Shown one piece after another: positions 728 through 62,899 of a DNA stretch of 64,000 nt; within the stretch, counting starts at the first letter, position 1; each line of letters begins with the position of its first letter. The stretch comes from Octopus sinensis (lineage: Eukaryota). The translations under genes and the position numbers were made by a program. Location of the stretch: assembly GCF_006345805.1 (NCBI RefSeq), contig NC_043014.1:4836001-4900000 (forward strand). Reading direction: 5' to 3'. The notes beneath the pieces were generated by a model. That model was not told the DNA's origin. It made no database searches and saw only the letters and a program-made list of their open reading frames with translations.

Positions 728-779
728 TTGGCGTGTCATCAGGCTTATCGTCGAGAGATTTCTTGGATATGAAACGGTT
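728..779 (-). CDS. Gene A exon 2 (NRFISKKSLDDKPDDTP)
   Basis: Acceptor ttctattttttcacag, donor gtaaga; 52 nt, phase 0 to 1; differences between copies fall at third codon positions of this frame. Confidence 0.8.
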
Positions 780-884
780 CTGTGAAAAAATAGAAATTGC
801 CTCATATAAATAGAACTTCAGGGTATTTATTATCGTTTAGAACTTAAAACAATGCAATAGATGTCAACATATTCGGACAGGTAT

Positions 885-1255
885 CATTGACAACACTACC
901 ATCTCAACCCATTAGGAATCTTCTAGAAGGCGCTTCCATCCAGTCAAAGGATTTTCTGAACAATATCAGACAATACAACTCTGCATTTCAAATGACATCG
1001 TTTGGTGAATCTAAGAAGATAGATAAACATGAATTTACGCCGACGTCAAAGTTCAAGGGCAAGTGTATCCCCTCATTGGTTCTCTGGTACCCGCGAATGA
1101 ACAACTACAGTTCCTCCAAATTTGCTCTATGAGTGATGTAGGACAACAAACCCGACGTGAAGTCTCAGAATTTCCGATGATGGGTCGTGTTAGACACAGC
1201 GCACACTGCTGCAATGGAGAATATATCCACTGACGCATTTTTGGTGCGTTCAAAA
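885..1255 (+). mobile_element. Helitron RepHel N-terminal fragment
   Basis: P..LLEG...SKDFLNNIRQYNSAFQMTSFG, then (frameshift) KVQGQVY.LIGSL.P...QFLQI; I recognise this as the Helitron N-terminal region. Confidence 0.75.
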
Positions 1256-1599
1256 ATCACACAAACCCCACCTCCAATTTTGCATGACAGGTTAGGGCCT
1301 GAAACACTCGAAACAGACGCATAGCATGTTGCTTAGTCGAATTAGCCCAGCATTTACTCTACAACTGTTTTGTTGTCAATGTTGCACTTTCCCATATCAC
1401 CTGTTTCAAAATGACTCGAATATATTATATACCAACTTTGCCATTTTAATCCCCAGCAATGTCGGGTATGTCTGCAATTACAAACACACACAGACACACA
1501 CACATACACACACATATTTCTACATATATATATATATATATATATATATATATATATATATATATATATATCTACACACACACATATGTATGTATATAG

Positions 1600-1870
1600 T
1601 TAAATTTAATCCAAACAAGAAAGCACAAAAAAACACAACAATGCGGGGACGTGGACAAATATAGTATTATTGGACGCTCAGGAAAAAGGAAAGAAGGAGG
1701 GTTTAACGTTTCGACCGAAGCTCTTCGTCGGATACATACGAGAAGGAAAGATCCAGAGGAGGGAAGACAGAGGAAAAAACATCGGTACATACGCGTCACA
1801 TTTTGAATGACCGGAAAGAAATGGGTGAATAAAAGTTCTTTCAAAGACAGGAGAGTGGTAGAGGAGGAGG
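1600..1870 (-). mobile_element. Short PLE pseudo-LTR-like repeat with hammerhead-like motif (paralogs ~12950-13230, 33230-33400, 47055-47335, 63770-64000)
   Basis: Abuts (TA)n tracts; contains CCGACGA-A-stem-GAAACGTY on the minus strand. Confidence 0.5.
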
Positions 1871-2807
1871 AATGTGTGTGTAAGTGTGGATAAGAGCGTA
1901 TGCGGAGGTCTGCGTGTGCGTGTGTGTGTCTGTGTGTATGTGTGCAATGATTACACGTGTGTCTGTGTGTGGTTGCGTGTTGTAGGGTTAGTAGTGTTAA
2001 GGTCAAGGAAGAAGGAATTGGGCGTGGCTCCTTTTGTCTCTACCACAGGTCAAGTAGTAGGTACCGTTAGTGTGAAGTTTGTGTGTGTGTGCGTGTATGT
2101 ATATGTATCATGTGTGTGTTTTGTTTGTAGTGTGTGTGTGTATGTATGTGTGTCTTCGTGTGTGTATGCGTAGAGTTTGGGTGTGTGGCGAATAACTCTC
2201 CTTTACTTAGTGCATGTGTGCGTGTGTGCTTCTATGTATAATTGTGTGCGTGTATGTATAATTGTGTGCCGTGTGTATGGGATGTATGTGTGGGTTCATT
2301 TGTGTGTGTGTGTGTGTGTGTGTATATGTATGTGCGAGCGTGTGTCTTATGTGCGTGTACGTGTGCGTTTGTATGTGTTTATGTAAGCGTGTATAGGTGT
2401 ATATACGTGTATCCGCAGTGTTGTGAGTTTTGGGTGTGTGCATTCGTGTGCGTGTGTGCGTGCATATGTGTGCGCATGATTTTGCGTGCGTGTGTGTGTG
2501 TGTGCTGTGTCTATATGTGTATACGTATGTGTATGTGTGTGTGGGCGTGTAGGCATATATTGTGTGTATGTATATGTATTTGTGTGGATGTGAATTTGTG
2601 CATGCGTGTGTGTGTGTGTGGGTTTTTGGAGTTCTGTGCGCTTAAGTGCGTGTATGTGCGTGTGTGTCTGTGCCCATGTGTGTATAATTGTGTGCGTATG
2701 TGTATTGTGTGTTGGAGGTACATTTGGGCATCTGTGCTGGTGTGTGCGTATGTACGTGGGTATGTGTGTGTGCGTGTTTTGTGTGCATATGATACATATA
2801 TATATAT

Positions 2808-59340: not shown

Positions 59341-60758
59341 ATATATATATATATGCATATATATGTTGTGTGTTTACGGGTACCTATTTGTGGTTGCGAC
59401 GTGGATTATTATGTATGTTTGCATGGCGTAGATGTTTTTCGGTAGAATTCAATAGATGGAGAAATAGAAAGATATTTTATAACGCATGCACTCCGAAATG
59501 GAAAAGATGTTCACGTGTGAACGGGTATATTTTGGGTGGTGGAAATTGTAGGAGGTTTGAGTAGGACAATACGGGAGACGACGAGATGCAGAGAAGTGGT
59601 GGGTAACCGTCGATGAAATGTTGTTTAGTCGATCATACGAGAATCAGTGGCTAAACCTCTCGTTTAGACTCGGACGAATCAGGCTTACATAGACGTTATG
59701 ATCACACAGACTTTTTTTCATGCAATACACAGAAACGAGATGGGAGGAAAAATTGTGAGGTTCAGTGATGGCGTAGTGCTTAAGATGAATGGACGGCGGA
59801 GTGGGCGACCGAAAAAGGATACGTGTAGGGTTTACAGGGAGCAGATTCAGAGCATTTTTAAGGAATGTTAGGTTGATTGGGGAAGCCGTTGGAAGCGGCA
59901 GTTTTGAATTGGAAGTGTCGTAATTACCTTACAAGGATATACTGGATAATTAATGAGGTGATGTGGTGCATGAAAAGAGCAAGGTTTCAGCGATAGGACG
60001 ATTTCGGTGAGGCGGAGAAGAATAGAAGTGCATTCTGTACTCTGTTGTGTTCTCTCACTAATATTTAGTCTCTCTCTATTTTACTTAATGAATAAAGTCC
60101 TTAGCTTTTTCCATCAGTTACAGTATGTGGCTTGTCCAGTCCTCATTCTACATTGTGCGTTCATTTCATTAATCGTTTACAGTCACTGTCATCAATTCTA
60201 ATAGACTCTATTCAATTTAGCCCACACCTACGATCATTGGGCACTCTAGTTAAAGATATTCAGGTAGCCACTTTTCAGCTCTGGTCACTCACGTACAATA
60301 CCACCATCCATAGCCAGTACAATTGATCACCAGTTAGCAGCCTCGGTATTTGATATCTACAATCCAAAGCTGGTCAGCCTGAAACTCTTGATCGCCATGG
60401 TGGTTTTCAGTCCAGCCCCTGTCTGTAATTTAACGTAGCGATATCTATATTCTGTGGTTAGACAACATCATTTTCACTTGGTCCGTAGTAGACAATATAT
60501 AATATTCTGATTTGACCAAATACCTACAAAGGAGTAAGCAGTCTTGTGTAGTGTCTGTATAGTCTACAGGTATGGACGTTTGAAACGTGACATGTCATAA
60601 AAGGATTTGAGAATGTTTATGTCAGACAACCCGACACAGGGTGAGTGTGTGTACAAGTGTGTGAGAGAGAGGGTGAGAGAGAAAGAGGGGTGACTAAAAG
60701 AAAGAACAAAGGAAAGACAAAAAGAGAATGAGAGGTGAGAAATATAAAGTATACTAAC

Positions 60759-60833
60759 CGTCATATACAAGTTTTGAATAAGGAGGACAAGTTGTTCTGC
60801 CCCACCGGGTATACAATGATCCGAGACCGGGTT
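60759..60833 (-). CDS. Gene E exon 3
   Basis: cacag/gttagt; identical to C and D exon 3. Confidence 0.9.
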
Positions 60834-61589
60834 CTGTGAAATTAAAATGAAATAATGTAGTTTAAAAGAAAGAATTGGGGAATCATTTACAAAGTAGGAT
60901 GTTGGATGGGAAGGAATTGATGGAGAAGAGAGAAATATAGAAGTTAAGAAAGAACGAGTGAATGAATGAAAGTCAGAACGAAAGATGTAAATAATAAGAA
61001 TAAATTGTAAAGAAAGAAAAGAGACATTTGTCTGTTGAGTCTGTTGGTGACGTTGATGTGAAAGATTTGAGAGATTAATCTCAGAATATCAGAATGTGTA
61101 TCGGTCTCCGCTATGAACGGATATATGTATGATACGTAAACTTGGGTATGAGTATATATACTTCTCAATAGAATAATGATAAAACTCAATAGAATAATGA
61201 TAAAATATTCGCCAGGTGCGAATATTCATCGGTCAATTACAAATATCAGTTTGGAGCTCGGCGCAAATAAGGCCATCATAACTACAATATGAAAATAACA
61301 ACCATACCGCATCATTTGTCGATTTAGTTAAAAGACATCGCATCCGGATCTCGAGTAGAGGAGTCCGTTCGATAAATGTATAGCACACCCCACCCAATAC
61401 CGGTGAAACCAGCAAGAAACCTGGAACTAAATATGGGCTGTTTGGCGTCGGAGCTCAAAATTGACGCTCTCAGGACACCAAAGCAGATCAAGAAGGGAAC
61501 AACCTTTAATAATTGAGAATTAAACTGTCTGAATTGTTAGATATAATCTGCCTGTAAGATATAATAGATGTCTCTTCTAATAAATTTCG

Positions 61590-62590
61590 TTTGTCCGACT
61601 TTTGCATCCAAATTGAGAGTGACCCACCTGAATGAACTTGGACATCGAAATGGATTCGTGATTGTATTATTTTTTTCGGCAGGTTCTTCTTCGGTTGAAC
61701 TCTTATTTGAGCTAATCTCACTTAAAAGTGATAAAGCTGCTGGTGAAAAGCAGGTTCGGCTTGATATTTTAGAAACCTTAAATACAGATGATATTCTCTG
61801 AGTGTCCCATGTACGCTAGGTGGATGGGACCTCTGGAAAAAATACCAAGGCAATGAAATATAGGGTGACAATCATAATTTCTTCGGACAGAGACCAAGGA
61901 GTGTGCTCGAATTATAGAAATGTCTACACTAGATGTCAAGAAAAGATAGATGTCATGCCCAAGATTACCGTCCGACACGCGGTACACTCGACCTTTTAGA
62001 CGTTCAAAACAGATCTTCCACCAAATACAGAAATATTTCCAAAGTTTAAACGCTATAAACCACGAAAAGGCACACGATCACGTGCCCTGGGTATTGTTTT
62101 GGATGGTTTTCCAGGAAGGTGAGTTTAATGGGCAAATCATGGTTGCCATAAAGTACTTATATGGATGTTTAAATGATTGTATTTATGTATAAAAGTCGAA
62201 AGTTTTTAACGTGAAGGTTTCACTTAGTTGAAGTGTGCATTGTTAGTGCCCCTTCTCATATTCTTTTTTGTGATCCGGTTGAATATGCGCAGCCATTGTG
62301 GAAGAGGCATCCCAATTCATCTCTACGTTATCGGTCGACTGTTATTTGTAGACGACATGCTGCTACTAGATTCGTCTCATGGTCACCAACAACGTGCACT
62401 GAATTGATTGGCTGCCGAGTACCCCAAGGCAGGATTGACAAATACGCACTGTGTAGGAAAGTGGAACATCATTATTTCGGGTCTCTATTCACGAATGATT
62501 GGAAACACAAGAGTGGACAGAATGCTGAATTGTAGATATAAACGCAGTGAAGCGCCAGCTCGGGCATTTGATTCTCAGATGAAGAGGGCT
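61590..62590 (+). mobile_element. Degraded RTE-type LINE relic, gene E copy (endonuclease part deleted)
   Basis: EKAHDHVPW, AIKYLYGC; roughly 0.7 kb present in other units is missing at ~61597. Confidence 0.65.
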
Positions 62591-62847
62591 TAGTACAATT
62601 CTCGACGTATCGTTGCATATATACTAATATACACACAATAAATATCATAGTATATTAGAGTAACATTTTAGTTAGGAAATTATTGTAAAGTAGAACATAT
62701 TTCAAAATAAATTCGGGCAAGTGTCTTAGTATATATTATTGTGGACATATAGATAATAACGTGGAACTAATTCAAAGTTGGTGAAATTATAAATCATTAG
62801 TTAAGGAGACACGGGTAAAAGACTTTAGCCATAAAATTAGTACTTAC

Positions 62848-62899
62848 TTGGTGTGTCATCAGGTTTATCGTCGAGAGATTTCTTGGAGATGAAACGGTT
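62848..62899 (-). CDS. Gene E exon 2 (exon 1 lies beyond the window)
   Basis: cacag acceptor, gtaagt donor, 52 nt. Confidence 0.8.

Follow-up and report, generated by a model that had tools for sequence, protein, structure and literature searches.

What protein do the repeated small exons at this locus of Octopus sinensis encode, and what might so many copies of it be for? The window, by which we mean the whole stretch of 64,000 nucleotides analyzed here, contains five neighboring genes (A to E) from a very large tandem array, arranged head-to-tail on the minus strand (Table 1). Each is assembled from exons of 144, 52, 75, and 497 nt with compatible phases, and every junction is canonical (AG...GT); the first exon, as seen in gene A, provides 48 codons with the ATG, the tail, the membrane anchor, and the start of the stalk. 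Genes C and D, the only two that are both intact and fully inside the window, give stop-free translations of the joined exons of 255 aa each, in agreement with the earlier note, which had proposed in-frame splicing of four exons into a protein of about this length. As had also been remarked, exon 2, of 52 nt, and exon 3, of 75 nt, are missing from the list of open reading frames, being too short to appear there in their true frame. Genes A and E extend past the window edges and are complete in the genome; the limits that the earlier note gave, 728 and 62899, correspond to the end of gene A exon 2 and the start of gene E exon 2. By homology, the four-exon structure is not a product of chance, since residues 1-92 of the gene D protein are 99% identical to an annotated 256-aa protein of Octopus vulgaris (P0013), and annotated proteins of O. 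bimaculoides and O. sinensis are put together from the same four parts. A conserved upstream block accompanies the four exons of every gene; this 120-nt block, in which AATAAATA lies about 105 nt before the ATG, is nearly identical in four of four copies as against roughly 90% identity in introns, and likely comprises the 5'UTR and the core promoter, the promoter role being one that we infer.

Table 1. Features of the five gene copies. Positions are those of the window unless marked as genomic (C18, the chromosome carrying the array).
Feature	Position	Strand	Basis or remark
Gene A exon 1	5171..5314	-	tblastn vs P0013 residues 1-48, 94% identity; ATG start, GTAAGT donor
Gene A exon 2, NRFISKKSLDDKPDDTP, 52 nt	728..779	-	homology and splice sites
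Gene A exon 3	C18:4835427 (genome)		0.5 kb below window start
Gene A exon 4	C18:4833236 (genome)		2.8 kb below window start
Gene B exon 1	16068..16211	-	100% identity to P0013 residues 1-48; GT donor
Gene B exon 2	12053..12104	-	AG acceptor and GT donor
Gene B deletion scar, near position 9728	9700..9760	-	blastn, gene C unit vs gene B unit
Gene B exon 4, open, 166 codons and stop	8162..8661	-	ORF and homology
Gene C exon 1	36188..36331	-	homology, splice sites, translation
Gene C exon 2	26100..26151	-	homology, splice sites, translation
Gene C exon 3, PGLGSLYTRWGRTTCPPYSKLVYD, first strand of domain and Cys1	23356..23430	-	homology, splice sites, translation
Gene C exon 4, remainder of NC1-like domain, 9 Cys, stop	20512..21008	-	ORF, translation
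Gene D exon 1	50426..50569	-	homology, splice sites, translation
Gene D exon 2	46157..46208	-	homology, splice sites, translation
Gene D exon 3	43413..43487	-	homology, splice sites, translation
Gene D exon 4	40455..40951	-	ORF, translation
Gene E exon 1	C18:4903713-4903856 (genome)		3.7 kb past window end
Gene E exon 2	62848..62899	-	homology, splice sites, translation
Gene E exon 3	60759..60833	-	homology, splice sites, translation
Gene E exon 4	58168..58664	-	ORF, translation
Conserved 120-nt block 5' of gene C ATG	36332..36451	-	near-identical in four copies
Matching 120-nt block upstream of other exon 1 copies	5315-5434, 16212-16331, 50570-50689		

Gene B stands apart in having no exon 3, which a clean deletion has removed: the 920 bp that carry this exon in gene C (23778-22857) are absent at position 9728 by blastn, and a search of gene B between 8.7 and 12.0 kb found no exon 3 match. 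Joining its exon 2 directly to exon 4 keeps the frame and yields 231 aa, with loss of the first strand and Cys1. The deletion, a retroelement insertion, and a minisatellite further distinguish the window copies, which are 91% identical in the nucleotides of exon 4 and about 90% in introns, while exon 3 is 100% identical across the three window copies. Given this divergence and the structural differences, we rejected the idea that the copies are alleles of one gene, a caveat that the earlier note had attached to its tandem copies.

The array itself is far larger than the window. The earlier claim of at least five tandem copies is right in that five are seen here, but understates the number about thirtyfold, with some 150 genes or more in an array of about 2.4 Mb. 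At least 115 copies lie between 3.67 and 6.05 Mb of C18, a 55.35-Mb chromosome, at a median spacing of 15.9 kb and in four blocks that alternate in orientation, and the assembly as a whole has about 150-180 gene units. Exon 1 has at least 150 genome matches (the best 150 of 215 candidates), as does exon 4 (the best 150 of 463, the weakest listed still at E 2e-78). For the two short exons, word searches allowing up to three mismatches returned 177 genomic 42-mers for exon 2 (93 of them exact) and 148 genomic 44-mers for exon 3 (47 exact), and the reversed patterns used as controls returned 0 matches in both cases. RefSeq models within the array are frequently truncated or chimeric.

Could most of these copies be unexpressed members of a largely non-functional, recently amplified segmental repeat, whose exons look conserved only through the youth of the copies or homogenization by gene conversion? 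The loss of exon 3 from gene B, a stop in 10 of 150 exon 4 copies among the matches listed, and the state of the RefSeq models would all fit, as would the search of octopus proteins, which found no transcript or protein-level support for these particular genes; in the collection searched, the octopus proteins with this N-terminus are all genome-annotation models. We nevertheless consider this very improbable. Exon 4 frames are open in 140/150 copies among the matches listed, all splice sites are intact, and exons 1-3 are far more conserved than their flanking introns. Overall dN/dS is below 1 (0.3-0.5, with dS of 0.16-0.22), and therefore points to purifying selection since duplication. Moreover, in the tree, the O. 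sinensis paralogues are interspersed with proteins of O. bimaculoides and O. vulgaris, so that many lineages are old and have been kept.

The proteins of genes C and D begin with a 14-aa N-terminal tail and a 19-aa hydrophobic anchor, after which come a charged stalk and a domain of 185 aa. Among 19-residue stretches, SISSLIAFGVLLVLTIVIL (residues 15-33) is the most hydrophobic, with a Kyte-Doolittle value of 2.67; the hydrophobic helix spans 19-20 residues, and the stalk that follows it, of about 35 charged residues, has a dibasic KK site. An AF2 model of O. vulgaris P0013 (pLDDT 87.8), which stands in for the window genes on account of its near-identity to gene D over residues 1-92, has a helix at 16-49, a disordered segment at 50-66, and a beta domain at 72-255. 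Membrane topology is predicted from just hydrophobicity and this helix, which together bear out the type II-like build proposed earlier (a short tail and a single long hydrophobic helix, then a stalk and a C-terminal domain rich in Cys). The long hydrophobic segment would serve as an uncleaved signal-anchor, placing the N-terminus in the cytosol and a disulfide-bonded, N-glycosylated domain outside the cell; the 10 Cys of each protein and an NYT sequon invariant in 81 copies support this extracellular exposure. TNF-family ligands such as ectodysplasin and the membrane collagens XIII, XVII, XXIII, and XXV, type II proteins that are shed at a basic site, share this order of parts, from a short tail in the cytosol through the signal-anchor and the stalk, which carries the basic site, to a globular beta domain at the C-terminus. 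The octopus domain, however, is unrelated to TNF and C1q domains in both sequence and fold, no collagen segment precedes it, and its cleavage and oligomerization are only predicted; KK is also a weaker convertase site than RxxR. Of 18 collagen-less homologues, 16 have a stalk of at least 40 residues, and in the stalk of these a dibasic site (KK, KR, or RxRR) is present. Because of this conserved site, we consider a shed form beside a cell-surface form, and a soluble product appears about as likely as a resident receptor.

Sequence comparison identifies the domain as the NC1 domain of spongin short-chain collagens, itself a distant sister of collagen IV NC1. The family name given earlier holds, as the closest proteins are RefSeq entries called "short-chain collagen C4-like", and so does the absence of a collagen region, there being no run of three or more Gly-X-Y in the proteins of genes C and D. 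The domain is all-beta, with 185 residues, 10 Cys, and two weakly similar halves, and is 50-55% identical to amphioxus and octocoral proteins in which Gly-X-Y repeats precede the same domain. Most of the homologues sampled are collagen-less. In spongin NC1, seven of the 10 Cys are shared with collagen IV and three are its own, and there is no HSQ motif (PMC5395295); the octopus family agrees in the count of 10 and in having no such motif. The spongin short-chain collagens and related proteins (Aouacheria et al. 2006, as cited in that paper) include the Ephydatia "short-chain collagen C4". An exon boundary before "GVAGG" seems common to the phyla, since exon-only gene calls in amphioxus and octocoral start there. 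In contrast to spongin short-chain collagens, the octopus proteins have no Gly-X-Y and would carry an internal signal-anchor instead of a cleaved signal peptide; they also occur in about 150-180 tandem copies with hypervariable loops, compared with the four spongin-like genes reported in Nematostella (PMC12549020).

The tie to collagen IV NC1 is more distant. The structure prediction and fold search suggested earlier returned, in Foldseek, collagen IV NC1 (PDB 1LI1, 1M3D, 5NAX) as the only matches above noise (E 4.5e-5 and 3e-3), with a weak superposition (TM 0.2-0.25, rmsd 15-18 A); a domain-only homologue was modeled at pLDDT 91.8. Aligning the family profile with human COL4A1 NC1 by hhalign gave E 4e-5 and paired VPCAVC...CYxGWTxEYxGYLM of the family with RCAVCE...CPSGWSSLWIGYSF, and the two-half build ending in CxVC is common to the octopus domain and to collagen IV NC1 with its two C4 repeats. 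The octopus domain is shorter, however (about 185 vs about 229 residues), has 10 rather than 12 Cys, and lacks the HSQ motif and a triple helix; Pfam C4 matched 0/87 family members even at E <= 10, and a profile search of PDB sequences with the family gave no match. Homology to C-type lectins, FReDs, or C1q was rejected, no match to these domains being found, so that the likeness to such type II receptors drawn in the earlier note is one of topology only.

What, then, has been conserved and what has changed among the copies? Exons 1-3, which encode the tail, anchor, stalk, and first strand, are near-constant even at the nucleotide level, and exon 1 is 100% identical in protein in 83 of 150 copies among the matches listed. 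Exon 4 has a fixed scaffold, with 47 of 165 codons free of amino acid change in 40 independent sister pairs (overall pN/pS 0.53), and its variation is concentrated in about seven hypervariable patches in loops; of the 24 high-entropy columns, 21 fall outside predicted strands (Fisher P = 0.006). By a simple counting test, which gives every codon the same synonymous rate and leaves gene conversion out of account, four codons in these pairs have a non-synonymous excess that passes Bonferroni and seven pass BH at 5%; the four are F97, D154, N197, and R232 in the numbering of gene C, where non-synonymous change is 2.5-3.6 times the synonymous rate.

This pattern bears on two further explanations. 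One, which we think rather unlikely, is a secreted structural or matrix family that goes into mucus, the sucker lining, the egg case, or ink-associated secretions as material, in which the hydrophobic segment serves only for entry into the secretory pathway and the many copies chiefly allow high output or material properties specific to a tissue, as one would expect of a spongin relative. Skeletal collagens of sponges gave the first known members of the domain family (PMC5395295), relatives show increased expression in the adhesive pedal disc of a sea anemone (PMC6626399), the dibasic site would free the domain, and the ink proteome of O. vulgaris includes a peptide from one member of the family (PMC10142993), which we also counted toward shedding. 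Dosage amplification, however, predicts homogenized copies and not a fixed scaffold with diversifying loops; there is no collagenous or other fiber-forming segment, and the hydrophobic segment, with a helix reaching residue 49 in the model, exceeds the usual cleaved signal peptide. The other, which we regard as improbable, is a code for cell identity or adhesion, in which anchored NC1-like trimers would pair head-to-head between opposing cells, as collagen IV NC1 trimers form hexamers, and about 150 variable paralogues would give distinct surface identities, as in clustered protocadherins. Collagen IV NC1 domains do choose partner chains and link trimer to trimer (PMC5395295), and the large array, the constant anchor, and the variable ectodomain loops, which follow a long strand at equivalent sites in both halves (F97/D99 and Q195/N197), would suit such a code. 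Against it, the cytoplasmic tail has just 14 residues and no recognizable signaling motif, the dibasic site suggests release from the cell, and, with the weak NC1 fold match, oligomerization is only putative.

With little more than even confidence, we are inclined to see the 150-180 or so anchored NC1-like genes as a diversified family of cell-surface or shed binding proteins. The overall dN/dS below 1, the weak superposition on collagen IV NC1, and the search of octopus proteins that found no transcript or protein-level support weigh against this reading. The domain would probably oligomerize, after collagen IV NC1, and the hypervariable loops would form the ligand-contact surface. Invertebrates have diversified recognition families in tandem arrays, among them snail FREPs, amphioxus VCBPs, bivalve C1q-domain proteins, and sea urchin Sp185/333. 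Like these and the clustered protocadherins, the octopus array combines many tandem paralogues, a conserved framework, variable binding loops, and signs of positive selection at a handful of sites, but its domain is unrelated, no sign of somatic diversification, an immune response, or a shared constant exon was seen here, and each gene comes with all of its exons. Of the earlier suggestion of an uncharacterized cephalopod recognition family, the idea of recognition gains from the near-invariant anchor, stalk, and first-strand exons and the non-synonymous excess in exon 4 loops, while the immune, skin, or chemosensory roles named there are candidates. The family is neither restricted to cephalopods nor unannotated: three Octopus species and Argonauta have models of 253-259 aa that share this N-terminus, and a type II-like anchor is also seen in P0118, a relative from amphioxus. 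RefSeq already has similar models. The array is not known to have been described as a diversified binding repertoire. As such a repertoire, it would supply the octopus with related binders of differing specificities, displayed on cells or released by cleavage at the dibasic site, whose most likely use, as a guess from the evolutionary pattern, may be in recognizing ligands of non-self or environmental origin, at epithelia or in secretions.

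Genes in the window are built from four small exons. The stop-to-stop ORF list holds four minus-strand ORFs of ~180 aa each, at 8.2, 20.5, 40.5 and 58.2 kb, with a mutual identity of 84-91%, and full-length octopus relatives mapped back onto the window resolve four kinds of exon, always in the same order: one of 144 nt that runs from the ATG to ...KSKT (exon 1), then exons of 52 nt (exon 2), 75 nt (exon 3) and, with the stop included, 497 nt (exon 4). All exons of the window genes have canonical AG acceptors and GT donors and their phases are compatible; among the five head-to-tail units, all on the minus strand and lettered A to E with increasing coordinate, C and D read through to 255 aa with no internal stop, bearing out the earlier note's proposal that four small exons join in frame to a ~255-aa protein. 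The limits it had set to the cluster, 728 and 62899, are the outermost exon-2 boundaries, and a genome search places the missing exons of genes A and E just beyond the window. Gene B shows, relative to gene C, a clean 920-bp absence that takes exon 3 with it; splicing of its exon 2 to exon 4 would keep the frame, but the product would lack the first strand and Cys. The units lie 2.9-7.6 kb apart, and a 120-nt block with AATAAATA, nearly identical among units, is found 5' of each ATG. That the tandem copies are assembled alleles was rejected, given the divergence and structural differences between units.

Intron 1 of gene C is ~10 kb long, compared with ~4 kb in B and D, because of a retroelement insertion and microsatellites. 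One ORF of this decayed retroelement matches a GIY-YIG nuclease (E 2.5e-4, just under Pfam's cut-off), as in Penelope-like elements. The compound microsatellites give rise to most of the 'HTHTHT' and 'CVCVCV' ORFs of the six-frame list, none of which is a gene, and the minisatellite, a feature absent from the other window spacers, to long 'LVGGSPGWLV...' ORFs. A repeated 94-aa open frame ('...NIRQYNSAFQMTSFG...') belongs to the duplicated unit; it has no Pfam match, and we take it to resemble a Helitron-type motif.

Coordinates of features in and next to the window (window positions unless marked C18, the assembly sequence that contains the window)
Feature	Position	Strand	Location	Remarks
Missing exons of gene A	C18:4835427; C18:4833236
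Missing exon of gene E	C18:4903713
Absence in gene B relative to gene C	9728 (gene B); 23778-22857 (gene C)
Intron-2 blocks, gene B	11289-11182; 10034-9975		intron 2
Intron-2 blocks, gene C	25326-25213; 24046-23960		intron 2
Intron-2 blocks, gene D	45394-45287; 44140-44072		intron 2
Intron-2 blocks, gene E	62073-61961; 61498-61412		intron 2
Decayed retroelement	28932-31895	minus	intron 1 of gene C	four long ORFs, overlapping or adjacent
GC-rich minisatellite	52703-54122		between D and E	92-bp unit, ~13 copies, higher-order periods of 239 and 331 bp
Repeated 94-aa open frame	848-1132; 26220-26504	plus	intron 1 of A and C
Long compound microsatellites (CA/TG, TA and related)	33660-35404; 5692-6268; 16532-18746; 36691-38602; 55883-56626; others		introns and spacers

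The protein of genes C and D begins with a short polar tail (residues 1-14, with R8 and R13), followed by its sole hydrophobic segment at residues 15-33 (SISSLIAFGVLLVLTIVIL; 19 residues, Kyte-Doolittle 2.67), a charged stalk (...KSKTNRFISKKSLDDKPDDTPKPGLG) and, at residues ~71-255, a domain with 10 Cys. As a stand-in for the spliced window protein we modeled P0013, a 256-aa O. vulgaris homologue with 99% identity to gene D across residues 1-92 and ~85% to the domain of gene C. Its AlphaFold2 model, based on an 87-sequence alignment, has a pLDDT of 87.8 and consists of a continuous helix at 16-49, a disordered stretch at 50-66 and a confident all-beta part at 72-255. Given how long the hydrophobic segment and helix are, we infer an uncleaved signal-anchor, which would insert the protein in the membrane with its N-terminus on the cytosolic side (type II topology). 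The 10 Cys, together with an NYT sequon that is invariant in the 81 copies of the exon-4 alignment, would fit an extracellular domain.

The closest proteins are RefSeq entries of Octopus sinensis, O. vulgaris, O. bimaculoides and Argonauta named 'short-chain collagen C4(-like)' (phmmer E 1e-99 to 1e-43 against proteins of this name), so the name under which the domain had been noted is the one its nearest relatives bear. Next come proteins of Capitella, bivalves, an octocoral and amphioxus at 45-57% identity. Collagen-bearing amphioxus and octocoral members are 50-55% identical over 99% of the domain, with up to 19 Gly-X-Y triplets immediately ahead of it in some proteins. Because these homologues bear Gly-X-Y directly before the equivalent domain, the window domain is, as judged from homology, the NC1 domain of the spongin short-chain collagen family. 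Spongin NC1 has ten Cys, seven common with collagen IV and three of its own, and is without the HSQ motif (Fidler et al., PMC5395295). The window proteins agree on both counts, HSQ being absent and ten Cys present at residues 81, 109, 159, 162, 179, 206, 233, 238, 249 and 252, nine of which are invariant or nearly so in the family alignment (all but Cys81, which lies in exon 3 and is missing from many of the aligned sequences). The short collagenous domain N-terminal to NC1 was not found in genes C and D, whose proteins contain no Gly-X-Y run of three or more, and the Pfam Collagen model matches 9 of 87 homologues and none of the octopus members. The Gly-X-Y region is thus missing, as was first noted, and for this reason the octopus proteins are relatives of short-chain collagens by domain, not collagens. 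Exon-only gene calls from amphioxus, octocoral and other samples (P0039, P0044, P0090, P0108 and P0110) start a few residues before 'GVAGG'/'GVMGG', which is the position of the octopus exon 3/4 boundary; given this shared start point, the intron that interrupts the first half of the domain may sit at an ancient position.

Relationship to collagen IV is harder to trace. Pfam C4 (PF01413) matched 0 of the 87 family members even at E <= 10, a Pfam scan of the four window exon-4 ORFs gave no match at E <= 1, and a profile search of all PDB sequences returned only noise (a galectin at E 0.2 and a RING protein at E 0.24). In the fold search that the earlier note had suggested, collagen IV NC1 domains were the sole matches above noise: they made up the best 18 Foldseek matches of the full P0013 model (E 4.5e-5, probability 0.99; nothing else above noise, E 0.26) and the best five of a domain-only homologue model (pLDDT 91.8; E 3e-3), with poor superpositions (TM-scores 0.17-0.25, rmsd 15-18 A). 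Alignment of the family profile with human COL4A1 NC1 (a sequence identical to PDB 1LI1 chain A) using hhalign gave a probability of 70% and E 4e-5 over 44 columns, pairing VPCAVC...CYxGWTxEYxGYLM with RCAVCE...CPSGWSSLWIGYSF, and Cys correspondence with collagen IV is seen in this alignment for CAVC and the C-x-GW region. The domain halves, RTTC...CAVC and RTKC...CVVC, align weakly with each other, echoing the two C4 repeats of collagen IV NC1. The link of the octopus domain to collagen IV NC1 appears real but remote. A likeness to lectin/FReD/C1q-like receptors, also proposed at first, holds for topology only, as CTLD, FReD and C1q gave no Pfam match and no such structure occurs among the above-noise Foldseek matches; homology to lectin, C1q or TNF folds finds no support.

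The window, at 4,836,001-4,900,000 of C18 (55,351,117 bp) in the 2.72-Gb assembly, samples a far larger array. At least 115 exon-4 copies lie on C18 at 3.67-6.53 Mb, 114 of them within 3.67-6.05 Mb, at a median spacing of 15.9 kb, extending the tandem cluster of five or more copies that had been read from the window. These come from the best 150 of 463 candidates for the exon-4 protein query, of which 140 are open and the weakest among the matches listed has E 2e-78; the exon-1 protein query was likewise followed for the best 150 of 215 candidates. An exon-3 44-mer and an exon-2 42-mer, each allowed up to three mismatches, found 148 and 177 matches, respectively (reversed controls, 0 in both cases). 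Copy counts from listed matches are lower bounds and may include haplotype duplicates on unplaced contigs: the remaining copies are on small contigs of this kind, and some with identical scores may be such duplicates. Between 3.67 and 6.05 Mb, the copies form four large same-strand blocks (15, 35, 26 and 23 exon-4 copies), and their alternating orientation suggests large inverted segmental duplications atop unit-by-unit tandem duplication. More divergent members (71-80% identity) are found at the 5.4-6.5 Mb end. Some divergent members, such as P0144 (O. sinensis LOC115221348, 301 aa), have a stalk ~45 residues longer, with a second exon-2-like segment ('...KCLDDKDVHTPRPGPG'). Such a stalk indicates that exon 2 is duplicated inside some genes, which may explain the excess of exon-2 over exon-3 words.

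Within this array, a constant anchor is joined to a domain with variable loops. The exon-1 protein is 100% identical in 83 of the best 150 copies, nearly all those listed reach at least 94%, and the words of exons 2 and 3 are exact in 93 of 177 and 47 of 148 matches; within the window, introns are ~90% and exon 4 ~91% identical. When 81 exon-4 translations are aligned, they differ in only about seven short patches and are essentially invariant elsewhere, and 21 of 24 high-entropy columns are located outside predicted strands (Fisher P = 0.006). Synonymous and non-synonymous differences, counted in 40 independent sister pairs drawn from 113 unique exon-4 sequences, gave an overall pN/pS of 0.53, with the amino acid unchanged at 47 of 165 codons. 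Four residues (R232, N197, D154 and F97, in gene C numbering) show non-synonymous change at 2.5-3.6 times the family-wide synonymous expectation and pass Bonferroni correction, and H138, Q195 and A181 are added at a 5% false-discovery rate; F97/D99 and Q195/N197 sit in equivalent loops of the two halves of the domain. Since the counting test assumes one synonymous rate for all codons and ignores gene conversion, this site-specific non-synonymous excess is good evidence for diversification of the loops but not proof.

The history of the array bears on whether it could be a mostly silent repeat. In a tree with the annotated proteins of other species, O. bimaculoides and O. vulgaris members are interleaved among O. 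sinensis paralogues, and same-species O. sinensis clusters with very short branches also occur; the interleaving and the short branches together indicate that duplication began before the octopus species split and has continued since, with copies retained. On this tree, the pattern is one of birth and death, not of a young silent repeat. Retention across species, the open frames of 140 of the best 150 exon-4 matches, dN/dS below 1 and the conservation of exons above introns all speak against silence, and we disfavor that explanation.

Models of 253-259 aa with exactly this build are already present in RefSeq and in the O. vulgaris annotation, so the single-gene observation is not new. The size of the family would have been hidden by the state of the RefSeq models in the array, many of which are truncated or begin within blocks that are intronic and stop-bearing in the window. 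Two conserved intron-2 blocks match the alternative N-termini of the O. sinensis RefSeq isoforms P0008 ('MPFRGLQ...') and P0010 ('...SLLDLLCCPETVN...'). We do not regard these blocks as real first exons of the window genes, because in the window they are placed 3' of exon 2 and, in several copies, contain stop codons; for the same reason, the two models look chimeric, or derived from units of different layout, of which P0005, a homologue with two exon-2-like segments, is an example. None of the proteins of genes B, C and D had an exact match in the protein collection, and proteins sharing the same N-terminal 92 residues were genome-annotation models only. The two Logan members of an octopus cluster begin with an intron-coded 'MPFLG', so that we read them as genomic exon-4 pieces and not as transcripts. 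A relative, P0030, comes from a cDNA-like contig (SRR8281674, 1104 nt) with an uninterrupted coding region and no poly-A tail.

A dibasic site is present in the stalk of 16 of 18 collagen-less homologues whose stalk has at least 40 residues, in most cases no more than ~35 residues away from the domain. Octopus proteins have KK, those of Argonauta KR or KK, two cDNA-like relatives RR or KR, and three other homologues RFRR, RERR and RHRR; amphioxus P0118, which has a strong type II-like anchor too, has RERR. This suggests that the ectodomain could be released by a proprotein convertase. Shedding stays a lead, since K/R-rich stalks could give dibasic pairs by chance. Bivalve relatives have a cleaved-type signal peptide and then a coiled coil in place of the anchor; with collagen, coiled coil or membrane anchor placed around a constant NC1-like domain, the N-terminal part has apparently been swapped repeatedly. 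An ink proteome list includes one peptide from an O. vulgaris family member (PMC10142993); in the searchable literature, this is the only octopus paper in which the family name appears.

The domain family itself has been known since sponge work and Aouacheria et al. 2006 (cited in PMC5395295 and PMC12549020). The scale of the octopus array, its invariant anchor and stalk exons and its hypervariable loops with signs of positive selection appear undescribed in the searchable literature. The earlier idea of an uncharacterised cephalopod family may hold for the array, which is apparently undescribed, and fails for the family, which has homologues in Capitella, bivalves, octocoral and amphioxus.

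What could such an array be for? Invertebrate recognition families combine diversifying loops on a fixed secreted-type scaffold with huge tandem arrays. Because these features recur here, we favor a repertoire of binding proteins, displayed at the surface or shed, that would recognise non-self or environmental ligands, the ligands themselves being a guess; the loops would form the binding surface, the ectodomain might be shed and, by analogy, the proteins may oligomerise via the NC1-like domain. The main rivals, besides a mostly silent repeat, are a structural secretion family and a protocadherin-like cell-identity code operating through head-to-head pairing of NC1 domains. A bolder version, which we consider improbable, is that ~150-180 genes serve combinatorial surface identity or anticipatory-style recognition, in which anchored NC1-like trimers of mixed paralogues, from few genes per cell, would either link cells by head-to-head pairing or recognise a range of non-self ligands via pseudo-symmetric hypervariable loops. 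If true, the octopus would have its own equivalent of clustered protocadherins or snail FREPs, on a scaffold not known in such use, the assembly domain of basement-membrane collagen.

Cephalopod genomes contain a few very large family expansions tied to unusual biology, for example protocadherins and zinc-finger genes. With about 150 or more genes in 2.4 Mb, the array would be another expansion of similar size, with a signature of invariant anchor and stalk, diversifying loops and an NC1 domain in a collagen-free setting. Should the genes be silent or purely structural, it would be a large but ordinary tandem family. The 2006 work of Aouacheria et al. is said to have left open the role of spongin-type NC1 domains outside sponges. 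If the octopus proteins prove to bind ligands that differ between paralogues, at the surface or in shed form, they would constitute a new class of invertebrate recognition molecules and would give an experimental handle on that role.
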